From positions 15,128,001 to 15,192,000 of the forward strand of contig OZ038378.1 in the NCBI GenBank assembly GCA_964036045.1: a DNA stretch of 64,000 nt. The letters run 5' to 3'. This document shows positions 43,154-63,200 of the stretch, one piece after another. The notes under the pieces were generated by a model, which had not been told where the DNA came from, made no database searches, and worked only from the letters and a program-made list of their open reading frames with translations. Source of the stretch: Eutreptiella sp. 'Long Island Sound 2002' (Eukaryota; Protista; Euglenida). The position numbers and the translations under genes were made by a program. The first letter of the stretch is position 1. Each line of letters begins with the position of its first letter.

Positions 43154-46100
43154 GGGGGGTCCAGTAATGCCCGTTCCTTTTACAGCCAGAATTCAGCAGT
43201 CATCAGCTGCGTCCCATCCCGTGTGCGACGCAGGAAGTCCCGTGTGTGACGCTTTGGGCACATACCGGAATCCTGGGGCGAGTAACTCACAGGGACAAAC
43301 AGACGATGGCCTGGCTGTAAGCCCCCCGGCCCCCCCGCTGTCTCCCCTCCCTTCCCCTTCGTCTTCCCTCTCCACTGTGCACGCCGCAGCCCTCTCTCAC
43401 CCAGATATCCACCCAAGCGCGGACTGCCCTTTGTTAAGGGCCTGGTCTCCCCCCCCCCCCTGTGTGACATTCCGTCTGGTTGTTGCTCCTTTACGGGGCC
43501 CTGGACGGTCACCCGTTCTTCCCTTCGCATGTTGCGTCAGGTCGCTGCTTTCTGTCGGCCGCTGCGGCCGCTGCTCCTGCTGGTGTCGTTTCCGCGTTCG
43601 CGGAGCCCAGTAGTTGGCGTGTTGGGACTGTGCTGAATGTGGCATGGTGTGCCGTTTGCGTGTCAGCGGCGCCCAATAATTGGCGTATTGAGGATGTGAT
43701 GGTTGTTGCCGGGGTCGTTTGACTGTTTTTGCTGTCCACACACCTCTGTCCACAGGCCGTCCATAGCCTGCCTCGCTGTGTTTCTGTGCGGCCCAGGTGC
43801 CCTGTTCCTCCACGCGCTGTCCGGGCTGTCCACCATATGTCCTTTTCCCCCTCACGGCTGGTCTGCCCCTGATGGGCTCCCGCTTCTGTTGCGCAAACAG
43901 CCCATCTGGGCTGTGGGAGACACCCCCCACCTGATGCCGGTTGAGCAGGGGTTGCCCTGGCACCCGGTAGCGACGGGGTTGGCTGGCCAAGCCATCCCCT
44001 TTGTTGTCGCTGCCTCCCATGCGCACGCTCCACCATTTGCTCCATTCTGGTTCCCTGTTCCTGCCGTTCTGGTAGCCTCTCCTGCCTTGCTGTGCCCCTC
44101 CTCCTTGTCTGGTGTGCCCGCCCTTGTCCCCCTTGGTGTGGCTCCCGCGTTTTGTGTGTCTGTGTTGCTCCTCCCCCTGTCTGGTGGCGCTGCTGGGTGG
44201 CCCTCCCCCCCCCTTCCACCAATGGTGCTTTAGGGTGCACCATTGCCCCCTCCCCGCAACCGTTTATGGGACCCCCCCCACCAACACTCGTACACCAGCT
44301 GCGCAGTCTGGCTCTCGGGTAGACAGACCCTCCGTCCGAGTACAAAACCTCCCTGCCCACCCCGGCAAAGGGCCGCACATGTCCGTAACGTTCGGCTCCG
44401 CCTGTTTGCTTTCATCAGTGATCTCTCTGCTTCGGCTGCTGAGCTTCGGGGGAAACAGATTATATATGTGGGGCCCAAGGGGCTTCCCTCGCTTCCCGAG
44501 AAACACTCCATTTGCAAAACCTTGAAGTAAAACTTCAAGTGGCATGACAGCGGGCCCCCCTGCGGCCACAACCGCGCGGGAGGGGGGGGTGCCGGCCACC
44601 CATGCTCCCACCCAGACGCCTCCCCCCATTGCAAATAGCTCCTGATGGCCGCAGCCTGCCCCAACCCTCCCCCGTACGGCAGGGCGTTGGCGACCTGGGG
44701 GGATGTTGGCCTCCAGGATGTCATCCATGGTTTTTGTCGCATAGTCCTGGTACGTGGCCTCCAGGGAAGCAGCCTTGAGGGCCTGCTGGCGCGATTTGTA
44801 GATGGCTGAGCGCTGTGTGTTCAACACCTGACACCGTGAGGACAGCAGAAGGGACAACATGAGACGAGATGTAGTGTTGAGGGAAGACGAATCCAGAGAG
44901 TGACAGTCACCGGTGATCGCAACCGCCCGATCGGACGGCCCTTGCCTCTTGGCAACGATGATGCAAATCTCCTCCGACAACACTGCCACCAGCCACGCAC
45001 TTGGGTAGGCCACTGGGGTTCCTTGACGCGTTGAGTTACCGGGGCTAAATTCTCGTGTGGCTGCGGATTCTCGTCTATGGCTGATCACGCAGGGCCCTGC
45101 CCCGCCCCTGTCCCCTGCTGCGCAGCCACGGGGCCATCCTCCCACCACACTGCCCCCTGCAGCCCTTGGCCTGCGTCGCACTCTTACCTCTTTCCCTCTG
45201 CGCCCGGGCCGCGCACTGCCGCATTGCATCTGCCAGGAGCAGTGCAGACACACGGACCTGCTGCCCGTCTGCACAACAGGAGTCCATCTGCGGTACATCC
45301 ATTGCCCATTGCCCGAGGCCGGGCGCACCCGTGCGTCTCTTGGGACGTGCTACATGAATTGGTACACCTGATGCGCGCTGCTGTTTGCTCTGCCGGGCCG
45401 TCAACGAGACCCCGACCCACCACCGGATCATTCTGGAGGCAATGTTTCGGGGCTGAAAGATGTTCAAAACAGTTTCGCGTGGGCTGCTTTGTGGCACAAT
45501 GTCCTTGCGTCATCGGCCTTGCGACCGCTCTCTTACTCTGTGTTCCAGTCGGCGGTTGTGAGGTCTGCTGCTTCGACATGGCGAGCAGCGGCAACGGCTG
45601 TGTGTCGTGGTCCTTTTGATGTGTTTCATACCCTGACCCACCCCTTTCCCAGCCTTTGTTTGGGTACTTGGTGGTGCACCGATCAACGGCGGCCTCAAGC
45701 CATGTGGGCTCGAAGGACCGCACGCTGCATGATGCTGAGTACACGGCGCCATCTGATAGACATCCGCCAGACCATTTGCTCGGTCGATGTCCACTTTGCG
45801 GATGCTGCTGCCCCTCCCCCCCCCCCTTTGAGGACTCCACCCCAGCATCCTCCTGCTGCGCCCGCCAGTCGCACTACCGCCGTCTGTATTGGTGCTGGGC
45901 AGCTAGTGTGTGGCGCAGCGCACAGCCATTTTCCTACCCAGACCACCACAAGTGCCATCCCACGGCGCAGTCGCCAGGCATGCCTATGCAAAGGTGTTGC
46001 GTGAGATACCAAAGACCAAAGAGGAGGCCTGGGAAGGCTGCCTATGAACGAGGGTGCAGGCGCGGGCACAAAGCCAGGCCTTCATGAAGCAGGGGCTGAA

Positions 46101-49100
46101 AGCGTGGGCCACGCTCAAGGCAATACGCACCTCATCACACTTGACACAGGGCACACACCTGATCATATTCAAAGAGGTTCTTTCGGATATCAAAGAAGTA
46201 GGACTCCACTTTCTTCTGTACCTGCACCACAATACGTTCCAGGTGCCCTTCCTGTGCCCGGTCCATGCCTCTCCGTACGCCCTTTGAAGGCCTCCTGCAT
46301 GCCCTCCGAAATGCTGTTGGAGGTGTTCCGGGGCACGGGACTGATTTCCACTGCCCTTGTACGACTCCCCCGCGCACGACGGGGCAAAGGGTAGCCCGCC
46401 TGTCCTCGTTTTTCCGCCGCTTTTCCCCGGTCCTTCCTCGTTCCCATGCCCCCCGTTTGCCCATCTGCCGTGTTCCCCCGGTCTTCCTCATCTTCGCTCG
46501 TGTACATCGTTTTGGGACCCTTGATGTGCTGGGGGTAATGCACCGGTCCTGTGTACGTCTTGGGCCTCGTCCTCTGTGCGCCTCGTCCCGTGTGTGCCCT
46601 GGAAAGTGCACAGGCCCCAAACGCTCTACATCCCACAGGCCAACGCAGACGGACGTCACGCAACCGTCCGGGGCGTTTTAGGGTGGTGCTCTGGCATATC
46701 CTCTGAGCAACAAGCGAAGGGAAGAACGGATGACTGTCCAGGGCCCCGTAAAGCAACAACAACCAGACGGAATGTCACACAGGGGGGCTGGATGGCATTG
46801 AGTGATGGGGGTAGGGCTGAGGTTGAAGGCCTTGTCACGGGATATGGCCGATTCACATCCGGACGTACTACTACGGTCGGGTCACTGCTTCCTGTCGGCC
46901 ACTGCGGCCGGTGCTCCTGCTGGTGTCGTTTCCGCGTTCGCGGAGCCCAGTGGCTGGTGTGCTGGGGCTGTGCTGGATGTGGCAGGATGAGCCCCCCCCC
47001 CCCCCCGAAACAACCCCTTGGGTCCCTCAGTAGAACTGCCCAACTCACGCAGCACTTGCAATCCTTACAACTTGAGAAGGGCACAGCATGTGACCCAATG
47101 CTGCTTTGGGCTTTGGTCTCTCAATAACATCACCAACAAGCCATACCTCCTTCCCCTCCTTCGCTCCTTCCCGATCACAAGACGCAACAGACGCAGAGGC
47201 AGGGCAGTGCAAATCCGTGCCAGGAGCTGTGGGACAGGTGAACGATCCCCATCCCCATGTACGACAGGAACTCAACCTCCCGCTCCACAATGCACACCCT
47301 TTGGGACGTGTGGCTGCGATGCCCCAATCCGGTGTGGCGGGGAGGCGGTAAGGCGCTAGGGGTGAGGTGGGTGCTGCGTATCCCTGGCTGTCCCTTCCCC
47401 AGGCAATACTTGAATGGGGCCCCCACACCCGTTCTGGGTGACAGTTCATTCCGCGTCAACCGCTTGCAACCATCTTCTTTCTGTACGCCCTCATCCCCCA
47501 AGGCCTTTCCAGTCACTTCACACCCTAAAGCCCATCCCTCTTGCTGTGCCCTACCCCATACATTGTCCAAAGCGTTGGTCAGCATCTGGGACTCAATGGG
47601 CAGGTCCTCGATCTGGAACATGTTCATCATGTTTTGGATCTGGTCACCCCCGAACACGCGGAACAAATTGTCCTCGAGGCTGAGGAAGAACCGGGTGCTG
47701 CCCGGATCCCCCTGCCGCCCACTGCGGCCGCGCAGCTGATTGTCGATGCGGCGGGACTCGTGGCGCTCAGTGCCGATCACATGCAGCCCACCCAACTTCA
47801 GGACCTCCGCCTTGTCAGCGTCGGTCTCAACCTGCAACACAAAAGCCCCATTCTCAACTCCTTGGGTGTACCCACAACAGCGTTCGAAATCGGCCCCAAC
47901 ACCCATGAAATGGAACGGAATGAAACGCAACGGAACGGAGTGGAATGGAACGGAATGGAACGGATGGAACAGGCATGACAGGCGTTCGTGGATTTTACAC
48001 GGGCCTGTCCACATAAGAACGACAACGCCTTGACAGTCCGAACACGACTTTATTCACTGGGTCCGCAAAAAGTCAACAAATCGGAGCAGAGACTCGGAGC
48101 GAATCGGGGGACTCAGGCCCGGAATTGAACAGGGGGGATCACCTTGTACTCCTTCACCATGGCATTGTAAGCATCGCGCAGGGCTTGAAGGATTTCGTCA
48201 TCCAGTGGGGCCTTCTCACAGGCCCGGGCCAACTTTTCATCCGCATCCAATTCCTCAAGCATCAGCCTGCCATTGCCCGTCCAGACCTTGAACGCCAAGT
48301 CCACAGAGTCTTGCAACAGCAGTTTGGTCTTGTCAGAGAGTTCCACAGGGAACAGTGTGTCTTTCGGCTTATACTTCTCATGAGGCCCAACGCAACGAGG
48401 CATGAGAAGCTGAAGTGCAACAGTTGATGAGGCGGTGCGTGCTACTGGACGCAAAAAGACGAGCAGCAGTACCAAGAGCAGCAGTATCATCAGTAGCCTG
48501 AGCAGCTGCAGCTGCTGGCCATCACCAGAGCACAACCAGCAGCACAAGCACCACAACCACCACCAGTGGCAGAGACAGCAGCACTAGCAGCCACAGCCGA
48601 GCAGCAGCAGCACTAGCAGCATTACCACAACCACACAACCATTAACACCACCACCACCACCACCATCATCACCACCACCACCGTCCCCGCCACCACCAAA
48701 ACGGTCAGCACCAGGAGCCTAGCAGCAGGACTGACGGGTTGGGGAAATCAGGCCTGGGGAACTCAGGGGATCGATTCTGTGGGCTGCAAGGCACAACACA
48801 TGGGGACTGCACCGAGCGCATCTTGAGCCGCGCCATGAATTCCGGGTTGCCGCCGAGCAGAATGTCGGTCCCACGCCCGGCCATGTTGGTGGAGATGGTA
48901 ACGGCCCCGACCCGCCCGCTCTGGGCAACGATCTCACTCTCCCGCTCCACGTTCTCTGGTTTTGCGTTCAGGGTTTCATGGGTGATGCCAATTTGGTCCA
49001 GGCGCTGGGACAGCTCCTCACTCTGCTCGACGCTCGTGGTACCTGTGGTTTGCGAGAAGAATTGAGAACAATTGAGGAGGGCGCATGCCCAACGAGGCCC

Positions 49101-52100
49101 AACACTCTCATGATCGATTGAGGAGGGGACAGGCCATCGCTTGGTGCCTTTCCCCGGGGGCTAATATGCAGCGAACACATGTCATGGGGCACTGCTGCTT
49201 GTCATGCAGCAACCTTTTGTAACTTGCAAGGACCAAGGGCACTGGGTGCTGGGTGGTGTCATGCCCTTGCCCCGCTGAAGCTCAGCTCCGCCGACCACAA
49301 CAAAGCTCTGCGGTGCGGCACTGGGTCTTGATTGCACAACTTGGCAGACAGACCATCTTTGGCACCCACTGGACCAAATGCAAAGGTGACAACGGCCGGC
49401 GGCACCCGGTGGCTGACAGCAGTTGGGGGCTGGCTGGCCAGTAATTTGCAGGTACCTGCTGGCGATTGACGTGATAGCACCGGCAGGTGGCATCACATGA
49501 CCATTGGCAGGCTGCCAAAAGATGTAGCTCCGCCCTACCTCACAAAAAGAATTGCAAAATCTGACCAATAGCTTGGTGATCCTAACCCTAGAGCACCAAC
49601 CGCAGGCTTGTGCCGCGGTTCATGGTGTTCTGGGACAGGGGTGTTGTGCGGGGTGTTGCAGAGAATGATTTGGGGGGCGCGGGGGGCTGAGACGGGGAGG
49701 TTGCTGGGCAGGTCGTTGGGGTCGTGTGCAGTGGTTGGTGTTGGGCTGTCTGTTGTGAAGTGTTGACTCGGGTGCGTTGTTGTTGTTGTTTTTGGGTTGC
49801 GGTGTTGGGTGGTGTGTGTGAAGGGACTGGGGGGGGGAGGGGGGTTAGGCAGGTGAAATTGGGGCTGGGGGGCGGGGGTCTCCTACCCCGGGACACTTGT
49901 CATCCACACCATCACCAGCTGCCCCCAGCAGTCCTGCCGGGTCCCTATCGCAGCTTTCCGAGACCCGCAACCGCCGAGATCCCTTTGCCATGGTCGATGC
50001 CGCGGGCCCTATCATCGAGCCCTTCCAGGGCCCCAAACAGAAAAACACGCTCAGGTGCAGGGCTGTCCTTGATGCCCCCAAAAAACAAGAGCGTGCCAGA
50101 CTCCGGTACGTCTGGGCCTCAGCAGAGAACCGGAGGACCAGTGACTGCCCTCCTCCCGCACCACCAACGCAGTCCGGTCGGGCTATCGCCCGTTTTCAGT
50201 TCGAGATCCAGAGATCGTCGGTGACCTGAACGCCCGAGTCCCCTTGACCCCCAAGCGGCTTTGCCCCGCCATGTGTCGGCGTCGTCCTGCAGGGGGCTTC
50301 TGTCGCTCACCTTCCGGCCCTCTCCCCGTGCATTCAGCATGTGGACTCTCGACTGCCATCCTTAATCGTCCTGAAAATGTGGCGGGACTGGGCGGCAGGT
50401 CCCAGACCCCGAGATGTCGGGGATTTGCGGTTCAGAGGACCACCAGTCCTCCACTGAGCCGCACTGAGGCACGGTCAGTGAGTCAGCGCTGGGCCGACAT
50501 GCGGTGGACTGGTGGCCATTGGCCATGCGCCCAGGGCCAGTTCTGCATTTGAGGCACCCAGTCCCCACAGTCTGTTTACTCCGCCACCCCCCCCCCCCAA
50601 AAAAAACCTGATCAGCAGGACACAACGCCAAATATTACCACAGTTCTCATGATGAGAATGGAAAAGCCCCCCCCCCCGTTCCTAGGCCCAGCCCGGGGAC
50701 CCCCCCCCTCAGTACACCGCCCCTCACTGCTGCAGGGCCGCGGCAGTGAGGGGAATCTTCTCTACAGGCACAGGACGTACCCACAAGAATGGGCCGGCCC
50801 CTCCGATTGTACGACTTGATCTCCTTCACCACCGCATCCCACTTGCCCTTCTCCCGCGAAAACACAACATCCGACGAGTCTTTGCGCTGATCCGGTCTGT
50901 TGGGTGGCACCACGGCGACGTTGAGGCCATAAATGTCTTTGAACTCCCCTTTCTGTGGATGCGAGGGACGGGGCTCAACGCACACAGGCGCGGGTACATA
51001 TCCACATCCGTATCCACATCCATGTGCGCATGCACGTGCACATCAACATCCACATCCTCGATGAACGAAAGCGGGCCACACGAAAGACATGGCACTGAAA
51101 ACTTTGCTGGGGAGCCTGCAGTGAAGGCATGCATTGTTGTGGGTGAGGATTATGGAGAGTAGAACAACGGGGGTACCTCGGTCTCAGCGGTGCCCGTCAT
51201 CCCTGCGAGCTTGTCGAAGCCTCGGAAAAAGCTCTGGTACGTGACACTGGCAATCGTCACTGTCTCTGGGGCCAGAGTGCGAGAGGGGATTGGGGAGGTA
51301 TGAGGCTGCGGGCGAGGTAAGAGGGGGTGAAAGCACGATGCAAATGGGTGAATGAGCAATTGCCAAATTTGCAGTCTCCTCCAACGAATGAGGGAGCACA
51401 CAGGGTATTAGTTGCATTCCCAAGGAGGGAGCACGTGCACACATACCATTTACAACGCTCATGCATACCTCTCCCCCCCCGTGCTCCCGCAAACCACAAA
51501 CTCTCTCTGGGTCCGTTGATGGCGTCGGCAACATGTCTGCACCTCTTTCCGGGGGGTGGAAGCAGGGTAGCCAACAGACCCCCTGAAGGGGAGCTTCCAC
51601 ACTGATAACAGCGATGCGCTTGAGAGTCGCCGACCAGAGCCCGGATCTCAGCTGTAGTCAATAGCCCACTGCACGCAGCCCACAATCTGCAGCTCATAGA
51701 CCACCGCGCTCGACCTCACGTGCACAGGCCGCCAGTTGTCAATATCTGGAGCCCCCAAAATCTGAGAGGGGGGGCTCAGCAAAGGGGCTGAGTTGACAGG
51801 GCTATTGATCAGTGGCCAGCAAATCTGGCGCAACAGGCGCCAAGTCTGTTTTTAGATTTTGTGCTTCACAACAGCCGAATTTTGAGCCAAAGAATTTTTA
51901 ATTGGATCCCAAGTCCACATTAAACCGCCTGAAAAGGCTCGTGTTGCGTGATTCTGCGCACAAAAACGACCGCCGTTGTGCCCCGGACGCCAGGACTTCG
52001 TTTCCCAATGAAAGGGGTGGTGGTCAGGGCGGGAACCATAAAAGGAGTTGCGTGGGCACACGGAGAACAAACCGTTCTGCACAACCAACCCCTCCTTCGC

Positions 52101-55100
52101 TTCGATTGCCTGATGCAGCCCCTCGCCCCAGCGGCGACCGGGCATTGTGCGGCCTGTGAACTCATCGACGATGACGATATCCCCTTTGGACACAATGTAG
52201 TTCACATCCTTGATCTGAGCGATGGATGGGGCACCCACTGTACCAAGTCTCCCGAACACATCCGATGTTATGAGTGTGTGCGTGTGTGCGTGTGTACGTG
52301 TGCGCGTGTGTGCGTGTGTGCGTGTGCGCGCGTGTATGTGTGTGTGCGTGTGAGAGTGTGGGAGTGTGCGTGTTTTGCCTGAGCTCGTGCAAGCGTGAAA
52401 GGAAGTCGTTGGTGCGACGCAACGCGTGGGATGGGGCTCGAGGCACCACTGTTCGTAATTGAGGGCCAGTGTTCGTCCCCTTCATTTGGCAGAGAGCACA
52501 CAGCGTTAGGGGCGGTCCCCAAGCTGTGTGGCCCACTACGTTGGGTACGAACGTTATTTTTTATGTTGCTCCTTGTTGTGAGTATTGGTCCTGGACCCAG
52601 CAACGACCCTTCCAAGCTGACCCAGCCCACTTAGCATGCCTCCGGGCATCAGTGTTGAAAAGCACCTTCCGAACCTCACGATCCTGGTAATAATTAAGGC
52701 CGGGGCCTCTGCGCAGGGCCGTGGACGCCATGGGTGATGCTGCAAAGACTAGCAGTGGCACTTTCCTTCCACTCTCACCCAAACCACCCATCCAGAGAGA
52801 CAGAAACGACCACATGACACTGGACATCGGTTGCCACACGGCACCCAACCAGCCGTTATGGAACATCCCTGGGGAAACTCCAGAAAGCATCGGGCAATGG
52901 TCTGACGGAGGACCTGGAGCTCCTTGGCGCGGATGGCATTTAGGATGTATGTGGCCCACTGATCCCGGGGGTCGTACAGGTCATTCACACTGTAGACACA
53001 GCAATCCAGGGCGTCGTAGGTTTGCACCTTCGCACATCTCGCAAAAACGCATGGACAGGTTTGTAGTTGAATTGAGAGCACGAGTGCTCAAACAATCATT
53101 GTTTTTTCAAGGATGTGCCATTATGTAAACGCAGATGCTGATATCTAACAGGTCGCCTTTAAAACCTCCTAAAAGGTGTCTTCTCGATTCTTTTTTTTTT
53201 TTTTTTGAAATAGGGCACCCTTGCTCCTGTTTTGGATGCACATTTCGCACAGACCCCAGTGACTTGTCACGTCCAATATGCTCTTCTACAGCCATAGAAG
53301 GGAAAGAGTACTCCGTAGCGCGCCGCTTGCAGTGTCCCACAATGGTCCCAAGAAGCATCAAAAAGATGTTACTGCATCCAAGGCAGACATTCTTGATATT
53401 GAACAATGGCGGTGAATGGGGGGGGGGGGGGGGCAGTGGAAGCGGGGGGGGGCTGGGATAAGCATTCCAACGCCACGTTGAGAGACCTGGGCTGCCTCAT
53501 CCACAACCGACAACATCCACCACACTCTGCTTCGGTCTCAACGGTCGCGACGGGATAAAAAAGGCAGGCATCCCAGAAATGCAGTGCATTTCACTCGCCG
53601 GGAAAGCACATTTCCAGCATGTATACCGTTTGAGAAATTCAAGAAGTATGCCGCAAAATTTTGAAAAAATCAGCAGCGGAAATGCAATCTCCTGAATGGT
53701 TCTGCCCTTCCAGAACGCTCGCATTTCACGCTACGTATTCCCAACATCTCCCAACAATCGCGCTACAGGTTCCTGTATCCCCCTGTCAGCCCCGACAGAG
53801 GGATACGGTTTAGAGAAACAAGCCGTTTCCTATTTCAGAAGGTGTAGAATTGCCTCTGCAAAAAGCAGCGTGTGGAAGCGGGAGCTGAAAAAGACGTTGC
53901 ATGGGGCATAGGGCCCACGATGAATTGTGCAGGAAGGGCGCACAGGAGGCTCCACAGACACTGAGAAAGCAGCTGAACATCTGCTGATACTGTGCTGCTG
54001 CTGCTGATGGTTAGTTCTCTTGATGCTGCCCCAGATCTCTCCTTGTCCCTGCCCCAGTGCGGCTTCGAGAACAAAGGGAGCGACCCGACCCTTTGGCAGT
54101 GCAGTGAGGACAAGAGGGGGTCATACCCAAGGACCTCCTCCACGGTATCAAAGCCCTCTTCCGTCAACTGCACAGTCTTGCCCTTCTCTTGAAAAGTGTA
54201 ATGCACATCTGGTGACAATGCATCCGCCAACTTGGCAGCCTTGCGATATCTAAACACACCATCAAAAGGCAGTGGAAGACCTCATGCGTACGGCACCGTG
54301 TGGGGACAGCCTTTGTACAGATAGAACGTCTTTGGGCGGTTTGCACTGCGACTGTACGATTGGCATTTCGCTGTGACCGCCGCCTCGTTTCTTTGCACAC
54401 AGTGAAGTGTCAAGACACCAGCTCATATTGGGCAGTGTGTAAAGATGTAATGAGTGGAAAGATCCATAAGTGAAAAAAGTGCCGGATCCGGGAATACTAC
54501 ATGTTGCTTCGGGCTGTCAGGGAGCAGCACGCGGTATGCATTGGGCTGCCTGAGACCAAGCAGTTCGAGGCAGGAGGAATATGGAGCTTTAGTCTGCAGA
54601 ATGGTTCCGGTGGGGTCGGGAACTAGAACATCGAGGACAGGGTGAAACCGCCGCACCTGTCGGTTGGGGCCTCCGCCGGTCCACTGATGATGAGAGGGGT
54701 GCGGGCCTCGTCAATCAGAATGCTGTCGACTTCATCAACGATGCAGAAATGGAAGCCGCGCTATGAGTGACGAATTGCAGTGGAGTCGGTGCAGAGCAAG
54801 GGGTTCTGTGCTGTGACAGGGCGGCGGGATGCACTACCGAGGCACAGATGTAGCAGTGTGTGGGATGGAAAGGAAGGATGTGGGATGCGAGGGGATGTGA
54901 TAGACGCAAAGCAGGGGCCTGGGATGCCATACGCCGATGCGACGTAAGGGAGGGGCGGCGGCTGTAATGGCGCCGCAAAAGAAGGGGAGGGACCAATGCT
55001 TTGTGTCATACGATGTGTCATACATATGAGGCAGGGACCATGCAAACCCAAAATCAGGAAGCTTGCGGTGAAATGGGCATGTGATGAGATGCCAGCGTCT

Positions 55101-58100
55101 GAGAAGCGAAGACAAAATTGGGCTGCAATGCTTTCCAAAGATCCACATTTTTCCGGCAGCCAGTGTACATCTCACGGCAGATTTCAGCATGAAAACATGC
55201 CTTCTCCATAAGCACCCAGACTGCAATGCAACCTCAAGCAAACTCTGTCGCTAAAACGCAACGGCATCAACGTAAAGCAAGTGGTACTGCAGTGCGGGGG
55301 AGCCATGGCTTTTATGCGACCTGCTTTGTTGAGCAACATGGTCTGTCGGGGGAGAGGGGACGGGGGGGGGGGGGAATGCATTTTGCATGATGGACTTGTG
55401 GGTTCCACAGAAATTGCCGGAGACAAAAGAGACAGGGGATATGCGCCTGGGCCGAAATGAAGAGGAGGGGCTGGCAGGCCCCTGGAAATCCTGGGTACTC
55501 AATGTATGGGGCTGTTGCTGGAAACGTTCCGCGGAACGCGGAGGGTTTCCGCGGAAAAGGGGGGGGGGGGGGGGCAAGAAGAACAGACCAATCAATGCAT
55601 GCGGTGCAATGCATTTGTCCAGTATCTTTGCAGGGACACCTCCAGCAGTGCAGCCCATGGGCTGCTGGGCGTATGTGGGATTAGCTGCACTTTTCCAGGG
55701 CACGCAAAAGGGCATGCGAGATAACCCTATCCTCTCCGAACAACGACGTGCTCGTACGTCTCCCTGTTCGCTTGCCACACGAGAAGGGGGATGCTTGTCA
55801 ATGGTCAATGCGAGGGGAAGGGGCACGGGGGCTGGGGGGGGCACTGAGAGGTGGCATAGTCCCACTGTTCTACTCTACCGTCACTGTTCTGCCGCTTGGG
55901 GTCCAATGGTCTGGAACGTCACCTGCACCAACTCATTGGTCCGAATGGCCAAATTGTCCCGGAGGTAATCAAACCCAATCTCACTGTTGGTCACGTAGGT
56001 GATGTCCATATCGTAGGCTCTTTTGCGGAGGTCAGGGTCCATGGCAGCCTGAATCAGACCAACTGTCAACCCCAAAAAACGGTGGACCTGCAACGCAGGA
56101 CAATGGAGGGGCAGCTGGTAATGCAGATCCCGGACGGTGGTGAGGGTCATTCACTCGCCTGCTGCATACAGCACGACATCAAGAAAGTGCGGCGGGTGAC
56201 GAAGCCGCACAACACAAGGGGTTGACGAAGCGCACGGGAGGGGGGGGGGGCACAGGGGGAGGAGGGGACACACGTGGCGTGCGCACGGGTCAATTTGCGC
56301 CCTGGGCGAGATACTCACAACCAAGGGTTGTGGGGCTTTTCATTGTTGTTTCGAATCAATGTATGCAGGAATGGAAGAACACGCCCTGCCTCTCTCCCGG
56401 TCCATCAAGGAAAAGTGGTTCGAAACTGTCATGGAGTACAATGGCATCTTTCACTTGGCTTCTGCATGCCCATGTTCGCAACAAAGGGCATGCCCAATCC
56501 AAAATCGTAACACAACTTCACCATACCACAAAGCCCTTTCTTTCATCACCGAACCCCACCTACTCGCTCACACTTGATCCTGGGCTACCCACGAGCCCCA
56601 GACGCGTCAAGAAGTGGATTGCCATGCATGTGCACCCCGACTCAACACGAGGTGGGCAGTTGTTTTGCTTCAAGTGCCGGGCAGGCCTCATCCTCTCGCT
56701 AAGCCTAAGGCCCGGTCACAATGCCAACCAATAGCTGGAAAACAGGTGCATTTGTTCGGATTTCCCGTTTTGTGGGGCACGGTAAATTTTCTCACACCCG
56801 GCCCTCCATCGGTGATTCGAGAACCACCGAAACCCCATCCCACATCACCGTTCCACATCGGATACAAAGTCATCCACCAACACCTGGGAGTTCAGCTCCA
56901 TGTCTCTGCGAGCCAAGTAGTCATTCACCGTGACGACATGCACGCCCTTGCCCTCCAAGGCGTTTAGGTATGCAGGCAAGAGGGACACCAAGGTCTTGCC
57001 CTCTCCTGTCCGCATCTCCGCAACCTGCCCCTCATGCAAGATCATTCCTCCGACGAGTTGTACGTCATACGGCCTCAGTCCCAAGATGCGGAATGTTGCC
57101 TCACGCACCACTGCAAATGCCTCCACGAGAATGTCATCGAGGGTCTGGCCCTTCGCCAAACGTGCCTTAAACTGAGATGCAAGCACGGCAATGAAGAAAC
57201 GATGCAATGTCCGGAGCCAGGAACAAGACAAGGCCATAAGTGGACGGCGAAACTTATCAAGACGGAAGAAGGACAAGCAAAACATCAGATTGGCCGGGTA
57301 GCGTCGGTCCTTATCGGGCCGGGGCTCAAAAATCCAAAGGTCATTGAGCAAGAGGGAGTAGCTTCCTTGTAGAAGTAGGAGCTCGAAAGCCTCCTTGGAC
57401 GTCCCCTTCCATAAAAACAAAATGTCGATCGGTCCTTCCAAACAACGACCCGCAATATCCAGTTTGGTTGGGCAAATGAGGGGCACTATTCTAGCCCCTC
57501 AAGGGCTAGGGCTCCTCAAGGGCTAGGGCCCCTCAAGGGCTTGGGGTTCAAAGGTCAACAACTTCGAACCCGGCCCCACTCCACGCCAACGACGACCGCA
57601 CCCGGCCCCATGGGCACGATAGCGAGTCGTTGTTGCCCCAGACAGCATAGAAAGACGAAGGGGGCTAGGCGATGCGATCCGTCGCGGAGCGGGGTTGTGG
57701 AACCCCCCCCCTCCCCCACCAAATGGTCCGGATCATGGATTGGACATGGAGGTGGAACCCCCCCCCCCCCTTCCTACCATCTGAATGGATCAAACCCTCA
57801 AAAACCCTCAAAAAAGCCGCGGTGCGCCGCACATCCTGCCGGTACTTCAAATACACATATTCAAGCACATGCCCGCTTTGGGAACAATATAATTTGCTCC
57901 GCCCGCGGCTTGCACCCAATCAGATGGTACTTCAAAATCTTCCAAATTGCATGGAAGAAGGTGAACCTCCCAAACAGCATTGGGCACATCACTCACAATT
58001 AGTGCTAAAGTAAAGTGCAAAAATGCAAAGGGGTTGGCAAAAGACATCAAATAGGCAGTGAGCAAATTTTTGATTGGTGACAAAATTCTTCATGCAAAAG

Positions 58101-58669
58101 AATGTTCTTCGTTTGCAACCAAATAACAAAATCAAGTTAGTGAGAAAGTCGTCGTTGGACGACAAAAGTTCTTGATGTAGCTTGGGGCACAAAGCTGCAA
58201 AGTAAACAAATTCAAAACAACAAAGTCACAACAAGGTTATTGATCCACAATTTGAAACAAACTAAATTCTTGATCCCAAAAAGATGCTATAACGAACAAA
58301 GCAGTTGATCCGAAAAAATAAGGAGACAAAGCCAATGTTATTCTGACTATGTACACCACCAATTAGCAAACATAGAGTAGACATGGATCGACGCATTGAA
58401 AATGGATCGCCATGGATCGGGGTTGTGGACAACCCCCCCCCCCCCACCACCAAACGGTCCGGATCATGGATGGCGGTCGATGAAACCCCCCCCCCCCTCC
58501 TACTCCCGAAAAGTACGCACCTCTTCGGTTTTGGCCGCCAGTTGCTCATCAGATAGGGCTTTCATCTTCGGCTCCAACTTGTTGATAGCGTCCACACGGC
58601 CTTGGTATTGCTTCCGGGTAGCCTCGGCCGGGTTGTTGAAGGCACCAAGGATATTGTCAAGCCCAAACA
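36744..58669 (-). CDS. secA: Plastid (thylakoid) preprotein translocase subunit SecA, 18 core exons, ~902 aa mature region
   Basis: Exons 58521-58669, 56884-57171, 55923-56087, 54657-54760, 54127-54249, 52914-52989, 52073-52214, 51177-51265, 50781-50952, 48813-49042, 48143-48409, 47562-47831, 46159-46221, 44695-44827, 41836-41960, 40706-40798, 39349-39456, 36744-36854. All introns GT-AG and phase-consistent. Motifs: [97 protein letters not shown]|[10 protein letters not shown]. No C-terminal SEC-C zinc knuckle. Confidence 0.97.
37574..37785 (-). mobile_element. Tandem pair of tRNA-derived (SINE-like) Pol III heads in the last secA intron
   Basis: Unit 1 starts 37785 (A-box TAACCGAGTGG, B-box GGTTGGATTCCC). 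Unit 2 starts 37639 (TGACCGAGTGG, CATTCGATGCCC). A-B spacing ~31-33 nt, period 146 nt. Does not fold into a complete cloverleaf. Confidence 0.6.
42953..43101. mobile_element. Small MITE (~149 bp) with a perfect 11-bp TIR
   Basis: CCTATTACCCC at 42953-42963 and GGGGTAATAGG at 43091-43101, between a poly-C run and a (GT)n tract. Confidence 0.6.
43455..43760. repeat. Interspersed repeat copy (second, rearranged copy at ~46705-46990)
   Basis: 43530-43650 matches ~46875-46985 directly (ctcctgctggtgtcgtttccgcgttcgcggagcccagt). 43460-43530 matches ~46712-46782 in reverse complement. Confidence 0.85.
46705..46990. repeat. Internally inverted copy of the 43455-43760 repeat
   Basis: The two halves are in opposite orientation relative to the 43.5 kb copy and are separated by ~85 nt of unrelated sequence. 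Confidence 0.8.
47908..47970 (+). repeat. (GGAAY)n pentamer microsatellite
   Basis: aaatggaacggaatgaaacgcaacggaacggagtggaatggaacggaatggaac. Confidence 0.85.
48460..48730 (+). repeat. Compound degenerate (CAG)n/(CAC)n triplet repeat in a secA intron
   Basis: gagcagcagtaccaagagcagcagtatcatcag...accaccaccaccaccatcatcaccaccaccacc. Confidence 0.85.
57491..57544 (+). repeat. Three tandem 17-bp units GC(C/T)CCTCAAGGGCT(A/T)GG, hairpin-forming
   Basis: Units at 57494, 57511 and 57528. The first, with its flank, is the palindrome CTAGCCC-CTCAA-GGGCTAG. Confidence 0.85.
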
Positions 58670-58895
58670 CTGCAAAAAGATGTTACTCCCACTACTCCGC
58701 TTGACCCACGCCGAAGCCAATGTGCAACTACTTGTGCCGCAAAGAAGCCCTCCAAAATGTTTGCATGCGCACGTAATCCAACCACCCCATGCCTCTCACG
58801 ATCTTTAGTTGGCCGATTGTCAACCACCTCGAACCCCTCGCCATGAGTCGTAAGCCCTCGCCATCTCCACCCACCCAAGAATCCACCCACCATAC

Positions 58896-60182
58896 CTGCA
58901 CTTAGACTAGTCATTGAAGGATGTTGATCCATCTGTGGCAACAGGGTGCCGGACGGGTGTGGGTTTGGTACTCCGCGTCTTGGGCCAAGTGGAGACATGG
59001 TGGTAGGTTGTGTTCCCACGGTTCTGAGCGAGATCGGGGGTTTATCGAGAAGGAGCGGAAATTGAGGGTCGGTGCCACATGTTGGCTAACACAAATATGT
59101 CACTAAATGGTTTGGAGCCATCCCAAAGTCGAGGACGCCATGGCGATCAACATCACGAAATGGCAAAACAATCGGTGCTTACCTTGATAGCGGCGTGGTG
59201 AATGTCATCATTGAACTTGGCAAATTGGCTCCTAAGAGGGAAAGCAATTGCGAGTTCCGAGGGGAGAGGGGGGGGCTAGGGGACGCCTGGACTGCGAGTG
59301 ATGAGTTGCGGCCGGGCGAAGATTGCAGGACGCAAGCGAAAATCAACACAAACCTCTTCCCAAGGAGAAGATGCCACAACACAAGATGGCGAGGGCGGAG
59401 ACGAAAAGAGTCGCAAAGCCGAGCTGTGACGGCTTTTGATGATGATAAGGGTTGATTGGATTCTAAAAGGAATGAGAGGTGTCCTTGACTCGTCCGCTAC
59501 CCGGAGGGAGACACCCTTACGCGACCTAAATTCCCATATGAATAGCGGCCCCGAAGCGCTTTTCATGGAGAAGAACGCTTCTCTGTTGCGTTGAGAATTG
59601 TAGTACTAGTGCTGCATTGCAAGCATCCCTCCGCAAGTGCAATTTCCGCGTTACTTCATGAGGTCGCAAAGGGATACTGCATAAGGCCAGTGCAATTAAA
59701 ACGTCATCATACCCTAGATTTGTGTGCAACAATGGGATGTGAACGGTTTCGCTAGAAACACAACACCTGCTCCATCCCGTAGTAATCATGTCTTCGCCAT
59801 GGTGACCCACGAACCGCTGCCATCGCCACCCGACAAGGCTTCCTAAAATAGAGGCACGGGTTGCCATGGGGAAATGGCGGGAGGCGGTGTCGACAAACCC
59901 CCCACGCTTGCCACGGGAGGCCCCACAAATGACAAAACACAAGTTAGGGGGATCTCGATGGTGAGTGTATTTTAAGGCGGAGCACGTCAACAGGCAAAGA
60001 AAGACGAGCGAAAAAATTAGACACTCACAAATCTTCACTTGTGTTATTGCTTGCGCTCCGGGCCCCTTCCTACCTACTTCGCTTCAAGTCAAGCTTACGA
60101 TTCGCAATGTTGGGGAATCCGCAGAATCTTTGGGGACATCAGGCACCACTCACTCCCTCGCGTGGTAGTTGTCAGCCTCCAT
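58896..60182 (-). CDS. secA: Probable N-terminal plastid-targeting presequence exons of secA
   Basis: Phase-consistent GT-AG exons 58896-58932 (MDQHPSMTSLSA), 59183-59231 (SQFAKFNDDIHHAAIK) and one ending at 59767 (...GSLVGWRWQRFVGHHGEDMITTGWS). That frame stays open upstream through CLIFSLVFLCLLTCSAL to ~60085. Candidate first exon 60154-60182 (MEADNYHAR|gtgagt). The 5'-most structure is uncertain. Confidence 0.55.
60009..60034 (-). other. Genomic relic of the euglenid spliced-leader sequence
   Basis: Minus strand AGATTTGTGAGTGTCTAATTTTTTCG versus the Euglena SL as I recall it, ACTTTCTGAGTGTCTATTTTTTTTCG. Exact TGAGTGTCTA core plus T-run and terminal CG. It is followed by CTCG, not GT, so it is not an SL RNA gene. 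Confidence 0.75.
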
Positions 60183-60299
60183 TGATTCCCGAGCGAGAAC
60201 CAAGCATACTGTGGTCCCCAGTACGTGCAAGCAATGCACCAATTGTAAATACTGTACTGTACATCATTTCTAGGGTGTTTTTATGCTGCAAGTGAGTGA

Positions 60300-63200
60300 G
60301 TTAAAATGAAAATGTTGTGGTGGTCCTCACCGAGCGTGGGCGAGAGCGACGTGCATGTGATTCGCGGATTCGCGCTCAATTATTAATATGCCGAAAATTG
60401 TAGGCTCGGTTTGCTTCACCGAAAGTTGAGCACCCTGCTCCTGGTATTTCTGAAGAAAAATTTCTTTGTTGACCTTGCCTTGTGGACCCTTAGAGCATAC
60501 ACCCTCTGATCCATTGAAGGCAGGATGCCAAGGCAACAAAGATCACAGTTGGATAATATTGCAATTCCCGTCCATGTCTTGGGGTGGAATGGGTGCCCAC
60601 CGTCCCGGACCGCTTGCAACCAAAAGAAATTTTTCGTGCCACTTAAAAGTGTTTGTACGCAAAAATTCCCTCCCTCCGTCCCTCCTTCCAGCAACCACCG
60701 TGAAGAGCATTCATTCAATGTAGTGAATTCTTTCACATCTTGTGTCGAAGCATACATGAATGGATATTTTCCCATCTTGTTGTGGCGTGCCTTTGTTACA
60801 TACGTGCACACAAGAAAAACATGAGATGAAATAAATAGTTGCATCAACCATGATTGGTTATTATTGGCTCCTTGAAAGGACAAGTGGTAGAATTCATGCA
60901 ACGTTCGATGATTTGTACGCTCGGTATGCACCTTGTTGGCTTCCATTGGCGGAGGTCAACACGAGTGTGTTGCATTTTCATGTTGAGATCTAGACATGGC
61001 GTGGTTGATTGGAATTTCGCAACGACCGCAAGCTCGCTTGACATCGTTAATGTTGTGATCAAAAATAGTCGCCGCTTCTTACACTCTCGCAACACGTGCG
61101 ACACCCCTGCTACGCACAACATTCCGCGTGTGCATGTGCATACGACTTTGAGCGTACCAAACACGAGCGCCCGGTGAAACCCGCGTGCACTACCACATGC
61201 ACTTCATGTACATAGCCCTTTTGATGCCCCTCTCCTCACTTCGAACTTTGCTTCATTGTCGCACACATCGATCATTGACCATGCTGGCTTCCACCACAAG
61301 TAGTTTGATACATCCTTGCCACCGTGTACTCGGCGGAGCACCAAGGAAATGAGTGATGTTCCATGGCATGTTAGATTGTTCACCGAAAGCCAAAAGTTGG
61401 CCCCCACTAGACGATCGTGTGCAGCCCCAAACAAGCCCCAAATAGGAAAGAATACGTGTCCTATTGATGCCGCAATGTGAATCGTCACTTCAACTAAACT
61501 TTCAAAGCAAAGCCTATGAATATGAAGCTAATTCATCGAACGCTAGCGGTTGAGATACCCTTTTTTGCCAAAACTTGTTTCCAACAAACTCCCAAAGGTC
61601 TATTTCGAGGCACTTGGGTGCTCGTATCACACACGGACACACACATGGAATACAACATGGGCCCGGCAACGTGCCAAATTGTGTGCAAGTTGGTGGGGCT
61701 TCGGAGTCTTTGTGGAAGTGATCCAAAGCATGGCTGGTCCGCCGATCACTTGCACGAACCCCCTGGAACACCGAACGTTTCCGATTACCACGGTGAAACC
61801 CCTCCCCCAAATCCCCCACTCCGTCCTACTCACATGACCTAGGTTTTCAAGCCCAAACCCGGAGTATCGGCTGGCGTCTACATACGTAACACATGAGACT
61901 CCCAATGTGTTCTTTGCGCGATCCTCTTGTCATTGGGCATTCCTTGGCCAAGAAATGCTAGGGTGAGGCCCATGGTCATGGAAAAAATGCGGCAAATAAT
62001 GCAAGCAATCCAAAAATATTCATCAAGAGATGAAACGCATGCGACCGACGGGAGACAAATGCATCATGCAAACGCCGATGGGTGCAATAGTAGATAGGTG
62101 CAAACGTACACACGCAATTCACGTGAATTGCTACCTCATTGATCCAAATTCGCGACCGTCCAGAAAAGTATGCCGACAAAACAAATAAAGTTGTTGTGAA
62201 GTCTCCACACCAACGCAATCAAGGCGACACGTAGTTATGAGCTGGTGGAAGATGAGTTTGAGGTCGAAGAGGAGACGGTTTGTTTCCTTCGCACATTTCG
62301 TCTCTCATAAAGTGCATGCCACATTGCAACAACAGGTGATTAAGTTTTTTAGAAGCCTCGCGCACGCACACCCGCACCAAATCCACAAATTTGTCAAAAT
62401 TTGCGAACACTTGCGCACTATACGAACCGTGATAGCATAGACACTCTTGAATCCCCTGTTGCTTGCTGATGCCGCGCAACAACCGACCCACAAAGCCTCC
62501 TTGCGAAAAAAGGCGTGCAAAGAGCACTCGCCAAAAGGACTAAACAAGGAAACTTCGTGGGAGCCGTGATAGATGTGGCTTGAGAGTGCACATATTGCCA
62601 CCCGTTCTGAGTTGGCATGATCACAATGGGCCCCCGTAGAACCGGAATAGCACGGCGCTCGTCGAGTGCCCCACGTCCCTCGAAGGTCACTCTCCAATGG
62701 GGCAAATATGAGCAAAAGGAATGCATGGCGGTTTGTGTAGCCGCGTGTCCCAATATGCACATGTAGGCACACACACGAGAACACACAACGGAAAGGCGAA
62801 AGGACGGTGTTATTCCTTGCAGTTCAGCTTGGGTTTGCATGTTGCTTGTCGTTGTCTCGCTTGCCGTGCCAATCACTTTGCTGCCTTCTTTGGCGGCATT
62901 CCTCTCGTAGAATGTTCACGTGCGCGATGCATAGCTGTTGTGCCTTGTGTCGTGCAGCGCAAGCCGAATTGTGTGGTGCATGGAACGGGGGTCCTCAAAC
63001 CAAGTCGAATTGCTTCATGTTTGTCGTGTGTATCGCACAACTGTTATGTATTGCATTATGTACATTATAATGCAATGTACATGATTAATGTTACAACTCA
63101 GTGTAGCAATAGCAACCGCCGCAAAAGCAACCACAGCGGTGCACGAGTAACAGCAACAACAACAATAAGAAGTGTGGTAGCTTTTGTTGCAGATCAATTT

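Follow-up and report, generated by a model that had tools for sequence, protein, structure and literature searches.

The 26-nt string found on the minus strand at positions 60009–60034 of the window (the whole 64-kb stretch of DNA analyzed) is very probably the 5′ end of an insertion of 85 nt (60034–59950) that derives from RNA, and not a trace of the history of secA, the gene that follows it on the same strand. An initial annotation of this region had proposed that an SL-capped cDNA was integrated at this location, that secA or its targeting module had passed through an RNA intermediate and later regained ~21 introns, and that the spliced leader (SL) may have been exapted as codons of the signal peptide. 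Integration of an SL-capped, reverse-transcribed RNA at this place is upheld by our results, since the SL is joined at the AG acceptor of a dispersed repeat. The proposal that the integrated RNA was that of secA or of the targeting module is not supported; what is attached to the relic is the terminal 59 nt of the repeat. The features that were located in the window, together with the sites of the four independent SL-plus-tail insertions, are collected in Table 1.

Table 1. Location of the SL relic, the repeat tail and the 5′ portion of secA, and sites of the SL-plus-tail insertions (positions are those of the window unless a contig is named).
Feature	Positions	Strand	Evidence
SL relic (worn genomic copy of the 26-nt euglenid SL)	60009..60034	-	Unique in the window; canonical SL from SL-RNA genes
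Last ~59 nt of the dispersed repeat, constant 3′ end CCATCGAGATC, SL-joined at an internal AG acceptor	59950..60008	-	Genome matches; 30-copy alignment
Native secA upstream sequence (outron), from the insertion to the trans-splice acceptor	59845..59949	-	Unique in the genome; 3′ portion aligns with the upstream region of the C19 paralog
AG acceptor for the true SL on the secA mRNA	59843..59844	-	X2 and X5 contigs; end of the X3 contig
secA exon 1, 19-nt 5′ UTR and ATG 59823, encodes MAAVRGSPWRRHDYYGMEQ	59767..59842	-	RNA pieces; joint 59462/59767; paralog homology
secA exon 2, hydrophobic signal-peptide core FATLFVSALAILCCGIF	59353..59462	-	RNA joints; paralog homology; hydropathy
secA exon 3, presequence	59183..59230	-	RNA joints 59230/59353 and 59023/59183; continuous ORF
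secA exon 4, transit-peptide-like region	58896..59023	-	RNA joints; paralog homology
secA exon 5, start of the SecA homology	58521..58669	-	RNA joints 58669/58896 and 57171/58521; ORF; paralog match
secA exon 6, SecA motor domain, TIGR00963 ~20-121	56882..57171	-	Family search; RNA joint; 5′ splice site after GAACTCCCAG common to the paralog
Independent SL-plus-tail insertions	Window; C24:6.73 Mb; C12:4.25 Mb; C12:23.95-24.21 Mb with C1048		

The spliced-leader relic and the repeat tail

The minus strand from 60034 to 60009 is AGATTTGTGAGTGTCTAATTTTTTCG, in the same orientation as secA and with no GT after it, as the initial annotation had it; the letters that follow are CTCG. The SL of the species, taken from the SL-RNA genes of the same genome, is ACTTTCTGAGTGTCTATTTTTTTTCG, after which the SL-RNA continues with GTATATACTCGCTCC; the euglenid SL given in the annotation was the correct one. 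When compared to this canonical SL, the relic retains the TGAGTGTCTA core, the T-run and the CG, and differs from it by three changes within bases 1–6, a single T>A change and the loss of one T. The 19-mer SL core, with up to three mismatches allowed, is found once in the 64-kb window, while 0.02 occurrences are expected from shuffled sequences. A scan of the whole genome (2.28 Gb in 2,317 contigs) returned 5,218 matches to the canonical core pattern and none to the reversed control, and together with the expectation per window these figures show that such matches do not occur at background frequency. The 26-mer was thus confirmed as a degraded copy of the species' own SL, beyond chance.

Tessier et al. 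reportedly described in 1991 the Euglena SL-RNA genes as consisting of a 26-nt SL exon and an intron part. The relic shares with the exon of such genes the core, the T-run and the CG, but it lacks the GT donor and the intron (GTATATACTCGCTCC), and the repeat tail stands in their place. Genuine SL-RNA gene copies in this genome run from TTTTCG into GTATATACTCGCTCCT, whereas the relic continues with CTCGTCTTTC. It is very improbable that the relic is not derived from RNA, that is, that it is a chance string or a fragment of an SL-RNA gene that was moved at the DNA level. SL-RNA genes are indeed many and dispersed, as 763 of the 5,218 SL cores carry the SL-RNA intron motif downstream and one such gene is located inside an intron of a second secA gene on contig C19. 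However, a chance origin is at odds with the shuffled sequences and the reversed control, and a gene fragment with the lack of both GT and SL-RNA intron sequence after the relic. In addition, the relic is fused precisely at the AG acceptor of its partner sequence, as happens in seven other copies.

The partner sequence was identified by searching the genome with positions 59843–60120. Only the 53–59 nt right after the relic (60008–59950) recur, at dozens of loci with 87–94% identity, and the remainder of the query is unique in the genome. The tail in the window is ~88% identical to the family consensus (the range within the family is 85–95%) and lacks 6 nt (CATATG) that are present in the family. 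An Rfam scan of positions 59700–60300 returned sub-threshold noise alone, indicating that the repeat tail corresponds to no known small RNA. Thirty copies of the repeat were aligned with their flanks. All share a fixed 3′ end at relative position 0 to +3, CACTCACCATCGAGA(TC), that in some copies is followed by (GA)n, and their points of 5′ truncation are spread from -56 to beyond -900. A fixed 3′ end combined with variable 5′ truncation is the pattern that target-primed retroposition would leave.

The alignment also revealed where the SL is attached. Longer copies of the repeat have a pyrimidine tract and an AG (tgttaatgtgtttAG) directly before CTCGCATATGTC, so that they read ...tgtgtttAG and then CTCGCATATG, while the SL-joined copies read ...TTTTCG and then CTCGCATATG. 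The window, the loci L044 and L059/L072 and a cluster of copies on contig C12 show ...TTTTTCG/CT(C/T)GCATATG at the exact acceptor point. In total, the SL, ending in ...TTTTTCG, meets the repeat at this very base in eight copies, that of the window and seven others. Comparison of the flanks reduced these copies to four independent events with no flank homology among them, with the copies at C12:23.95–24.21 Mb and on C1048 being one insertion that was amplified five-fold by segmental duplication. A copy of the C12 cluster is bracketed by the 11-nt direct repeat CTGAGAACACA. Only RNA trans-splicing makes a junction in which the SL is joined at an internal AG acceptor and, therefore, the SL-joined units can be understood as reverse-transcribed copies of trans-spliced repeat transcripts.

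The same junction could in principle have been produced within the locus. In that pathway the AG of a repeat located upstream of secA was used to trans-splice the secA mRNA, and a cDNA including SL, tail, 5′ UTR and exon 1 onward converted the 5′ end of the locus. The relic has the orientation of secA and lies just 166 nt from the present acceptor, the sequence from the tail to the acceptor is unique in the genome with no other source locus known, and no target-site duplication of the kind left by a simple insertion is detectable, which also speaks against the insertion proposed here; around the window insertion only a 9-nt inverted match, AACACAAGT / ACTTGTGTT, was found. Nonetheless, we consider this recycling in situ unlikely. 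The SL-plus-tail unit, delimited by the same two boundaries, is also found at three further independent loci that have unrelated downstream DNA, and this recurrence means that a free-standing unit of 85–90 nt explains all the observations. Furthermore, intron 1 is intact and starts just 184 nt past the repeat tail, which requires that the conversion tract stopped within that span, and no RNA contig uses the upstream acceptor today. Present-day use of the repeat's acceptor would be recognized as SL joined to CTCGCATATG or CTTGCATATG.

The 5′ end of the secA message

RNA-derived contigs were placed on positions 56800–60400 to define the 5′ end of the secA mRNA. Two of the RNA runs, X2 and X5, carry the organism label of the DNA runs that contain 99% of the locus, and a further two are estuary metatranscriptomes, including X3. 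Two DNA runs with a second organism label, X10 and X11, contain 75% and 21% of the locus words. The contigs showed joints at 59767/59462, 59353/59230, 59183/59023, 58896/58669 and 58521/57171, all of them with GT..AG on the gene strand. The removal of five GT-AG introns is jointly shown by runs X2, X5, X3 and X1, and the joint 59462/59767 agrees with the end of the presequence exon at 59767 as given in the initial annotation. One metatranscriptome contig is unspliced from 59767 to 59913.

The contigs from X2 and X5 run past 59848 into the letters of the SL (reverse complement TTTCTGAGTGTCTATTTC). The lone mismatch within the piece 59848–59843 consists of the SL ...TTTTCG over the genomic ...TTTTAG, and the X3 contig stops at the identical point with the identical single mismatch. 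The mismatch and the SL letters present in the contigs place the addition of the SL at the AG 59844/59843 and the start of the mRNA body at 59842, where it begins with GAAGCCTTGTCGG. Scripted translation of the joined exons produced an uninterrupted open reading frame from ATG 59823 through MAAVRGSPWRRHDYYGMEQ into the SecA motor domain, with the five introns located within the first 164 codons. The ORF at 58670–58500 already encodes the SecA N-terminus, and matches to TIGR00963 placed the SecA-homologous exons from ~57180 down to ~39350 on the minus strand. For a euglenid plastid secA, these data provide a model of the 5′ portion of the gene in which the SL site, the start codon and five introns are verified by RNA.

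Ahead of the SecA homology, the presequence spans ~113 residues, in which a single hydrophobic core (residues 35–51) precedes an S/T/P-rich stretch. The hydropathy maximum of the spliced model coincides with the core and belongs to exon 2. Euglenid plastid-targeting presequences were reportedly described by Durnford and Gray in 2006 as a signal peptide followed by a transit-peptide-like region. The secA presequence resembles them in having a signal peptide core and an S/T/P-rich stretch; it is made up of exons 1–4, which are homologous to the paralog, and nothing in it comes from the relic.

The relic is found 166 nt upstream of the SL acceptor AG, in the outron that is discarded. None of the contigs of the secA locus placed on 56800–60400 covers the relic; this RNA evidence consists of assembled contigs and leaves room for rare isoforms trans-spliced further upstream. 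One contig overlaps positions 59952–59998, and its 4 mismatches and foreign flanks indicate that it derives from another copy of the repeat. The frame that reads KICECLIFS in the initial annotation is open through the relic (KICECLIFSLVFLCLL), but it differs from the coding frame, and no ATG is found in it from the stop upstream as far as the relic. Read in the frame of ATG 59823, the relic gives ...DL*VSNFF, where the asterisk is a TGA, and there is an extra TAA between the relic and the ATG. The ATG at 60182, previously taken as the start codon, initiates MEADNYHARE and is followed by a TGA after 10 codons.

These results demonstrated that the relic is not part of the secA mRNA or of the signal peptide and that it is cut away with the outron. 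The idea that the SL was exapted as signal-peptide codons is refuted on three independent grounds: the content of the mRNA, as the RNA contigs have the SL added at 59843/59842 and the relic is left outside the mature secA mRNA; the reading frame, as there is a TGA in the true frame; and homology, as it is exon 2 that carries the true hydrophobic core, homologous to that of the paralog. If the relic is part of an insertion as we propose, no N-terminal secA peptides matching LIFSLVFLCLLTCSAL would be expected.

The secA paralog and the age of the insertion

A second nuclear secA gene was found on contig C19. Its first exon includes the ATG, a hydrophobic core, an S/T/P-rich stretch and the SecA N-terminus, all without an intron. 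The peptide encoded by exon 1 of the secA gene in the window is 63% identical to the first 19 residues of the paralog, exon 2 (QKPSQLGFATLFVSALAILCCGIFSLGRG) aligns with the C19 signal peptide, and exon 4 aligns with the C19 transit-like region. At least three introns are found at exactly equal positions in both genes with both splice sites matching. The common splice sites are after GAACTCCCAG/GT and ag/GTCCACCG; ag/(G/A)TA(C/T)CGCAAG; and ATTCTTGTGG/GT and cag/G(C/T)AC. Such exact coincidence of splice sites implies that these introns were already present in the common ancestor of the two copies. The exons of both copies are 82–91% identical and the introns are unalignable. The DNA located upstream of the two genes shows no similarity beyond ~60–80 nt before the ATG, and in this upstream alignment no counterpart of the relic was found ahead of the C19 start codon. 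The two copies also differ in intron content. The gene in the window has at least 10 introns that are absent from the C19 copy, and the C19 gene has one private intron, in which a copy of an SL-RNA gene lies in the same orientation.

The SL-plus-tail unit is still ~88–94% like its family and the flanks of the secA copies can no longer be aligned, which indicates that the insertion took place long after the duplication. Judged from these comparisons, the insertion is much younger than the structure of secA and cannot be a trace of the origin of the gene or of its exon 1. The gene itself does not have the properties of a retrogene: it is a repeat tail, and not the secA 5′ UTR, that adjoins the relic, and secA is rich in introns, with positions common to C19. 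It is an old intron-bearing nuclear gene and was not retroposed.

The passage of secA or its targeting module through RNA, as put forward in the initial annotation, does not agree with intron positions that are exactly those of the C19 paralog. Retroposition from an SL-capped mRNA, followed by the regain of ~21 introns and with the SL coding for hydrophobic signal residues, is in our opinion extremely improbable. This pathway draws on a genuine relic that is co-oriented with secA, on a frame across the relic that is open and hydrophobic, and on the abundance of SL-tagged retrocopies in the genome. Against it, the relic lies outside the mature mRNA, there is no ATG before the relic in the open frame, and translation from ATG 60182 stops. 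Moreover, the coding frame has the TGA in the relic and the exon 2 signal peptide is homologous to that of the paralog. The introns shared with C19 predate the young insertion, and the SL is attached to a repeat tail.

The donor repeat and SL-tagged copies in the genome

Copies of the repeat that extend several kb upstream contain an open frame of 451 amino acids that runs to the 3′ end. Strings that are similar to reverse transcriptase motifs, ELDVKEMFPRL, RQKRGVAIGGLCSAQLAELYC and YRFRDNIVG, were identified by eye in an alignment (A2) as common to five related proteins predicted in the same genome. A frame located upstream in another copy of the repeat (L085:4880–5398) produced a GIY-YIG match with E=0.0014, below the Pfam cut-off, and the language-model neighbors of the repeat protein are clusters with HTH_animal/RVT_1/GIY-YIG (scores 0.86–0.95), a Penelope-like combination. 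Pfam searches with nine ORF pieces and five family proteins returned nothing above the cut-off and no reverse transcriptase, and searches of the PDB sequences with the single protein and with a profile returned no match. A word-based protein search matched solely unnamed relatives from the same genome. The AlphaFold2 model of the repeat protein, based on a five-sequence alignment, had a pLDDT of 33 and was unusable. No similarity was detected between the donor repeat and the Penelope-like copy L092.

Craig et al. are said to have described, in 2021, Penelope-like elements of the Naiad/Chlamys type with an N-terminal GIY-YIG. The donor resembles 5′-truncated non-LTR or Penelope-like copies in its fixed 3′ end, its variable 5′ truncation and the (GA)n found in some copies, and it resembles the elements themselves in having an ORF that runs to the 3′ end with reverse transcriptase-like motifs and a weak GIY-YIG signature upstream. 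It differs from them in that profile searches detect no reverse transcriptase in it, and membership is putative. In addition, the 5′ end of the SL-joined copies is set by trans-splicing at an internal acceptor and not by incomplete reverse transcription. The donor repeat is probably a non-LTR retroelement and possibly a Penelope-like one, an assignment that we infer from these features.

The pathway that may have led to the insertion starts with a transcript of the repeat that would be trans-spliced at the internal pyrimidine-tract/AG acceptor, ~64 nt from the 3′ end of the element. The product would be a mini-RNA composed of the SL and the element tail. With the 3′ end of the element still present, this mini-RNA could be reverse-transcribed and inserted upstream of secA, presumably by the element's own reverse transcriptase. 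The one member of the repeat family found to be expressed, in an X1 contig, is unspliced. The recurrent unit of SL and 64-nt tail points to the portion of the donor RNA that may suffice for copying. A more general proposal is that trans-splicing acts in euglenids as a generator of SINE-like mini-retroposons made of SL and tail, with the reverse transcriptase still recognizing SL-capped tail RNAs, as could have occurred at the at least four independent sites; we give this proposal an even chance of being correct. If it is true, the ~64-nt tail would be the smallest 3′ module by which the element is recognized, and the mini-retroposons would form part of a large-scale recycling of SL-capped RNAs in this euglenid, of which no description was found in the literature searched.

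SL copies without the SL-RNA intron number ~4,400 in the 2.28-Gb genome, a density of about one per 0.5 Mb. Among 30 SL loci that were sampled, approximately two thirds were fused to other sequences, including recurrent families. By a rough estimate, a handful of relics would be found by chance within a few hundred bases upstream of genes and in the sense orientation. At this density, the proximity of the relic to secA needs no special explanation. There is nothing unusual about the origin of the relic, which belongs to a population of thousands of SL-tagged retrocopies and lies passively in the secA outron. For secA this finding is deflationary, as it removes SL codons as a route to plastid-targeting signals, and it serves as a warning that an SL relic located beside a gene is no proof that the gene was retroposed.

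Slamovits and Keeling reportedly described in 2008 relict spliced leaders and mRNA recycling in dinoflagellates. As in those organisms, the genomic copy of a leader that is added in trans marks DNA that was once a trans-spliced RNA and was then reverse-transcribed. Unlike in them, the RNA that was recycled here is the 3′ tail of a repeat and not the neighboring gene. Dinoflagellate relics are typically found inside mRNAs behind a new SL, whereas the relic described here is in the outron and absent from the mature mRNA.

The literature searched, with incomplete coverage, contained no report of SL relics or retroposition in euglenids; only dinoflagellate and Paulinella papers were found, among them those dealing with relict SLs and mRNA recycling in dinoflagellates (PMC3229502, PMC5585692, PMC6616646). 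A preprint from 2026 deals with Euglena retrotransposons but not with SL relics. The clean junction described here, of a kind that arises only in RNA, shows that SL-capped RNAs were reverse-transcribed and reintegrated in a euglenid, as in dinoflagellates. The novelty is modest and resides in the mechanism of the SL-plus-3′-tail mini-retrocopies and in the euglenid host. A further likeness to dinoflagellates is that tandem relics also exist in this genome, where one locus (L011) has three SLs in tandem.

Introns of the two nuclear secA copies

The second nuclear secA, located on contig C19, was compared with the secA of the window (see the table below for the regions used). At least three intron positions are exactly common to both genes, but at least 10 introns of the window copy, including all four presequence introns, are missing from the C19 copy. 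This difference would reflect either a massive intron gain in the copy on C1, the contig that includes the window, or a cDNA-mediated loss of introns in the C19 copy. Conversely, one intron (L031 1661->1038) is found in the C19 copy only, and a spliced leader (SL) RNA gene copy falls within it. The location of this copy raises the question of whether the private intron could have been created by insertion of an SL-RNA gene unit.

An uninterrupted bacterial-type secA was also found in the assembly, on the small contig C773, and SecA-like genes are present on two more small contigs, C861 and C1115. These three contigs are probably bacterial contaminants or associates.

Coordinates of the secA and SL features
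Feature	Location	Strand	Remarks
C19 secA paralog	L031 (G000:C19:20495000-20504000) with L087-L090		Compared with window 46000-59900
SL-RNA gene copy	L031:1172-1200	-	SL then GTATAACTTCGC...; co-oriented with C19 secA
Bacterial-type secA	G000:C773:1695-4012	+	Uninterrupted; 868 bits, exceeds family cut-off
Tandem SL, three copies	L011 (G000:C1:1041249-1044268), around position 1500	-	Full; full with one change; 5'-truncated

Transcripts of the window secA

Spliced secA mRNA matching window 56800-59913 at 99-100% identity was detected in the estuary metatranscriptome runs X1, X3 and X4. Judged by this identity, the window organism or a very close strain was active in the samples sequenced. Since one RNA contig from these runs (59767-59913) is unspliced through the trans-splice site, the secA outron is transcribed. 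In the secA mRNA contigs of two other RNA runs, X2 and X5, both from one study, the SL reads ...GTCTATTTCTTTTCG (window 59848 and beyond), with a C within the T-run that reflects either a variant form of the SL or a misassembled homopolymer.

SL copies in the genome

The insertion composed of an SL and a repeat tail upstream of the window secA is flanked by a 9-nt inverted match, AACACAAGT / ACTTGTGTT (window 60037-60045 and 59936-59944, minus strand), which may be due to chance. Across the whole genome, the SL-RNA intron motif follows only 763 of the 5,218 SL cores. Several of the SL-tagged sequences among the sample loci L001-L030 fall into recurrent families, namely L012/13/15/18, L019/20/26/30 and L010/25. 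The three tandem SL copies of L011 are followed by unique sequence, and their arrangement is the one that in dinoflagellates is interpreted as the product of successive cycles of trans-splicing and retroposition.
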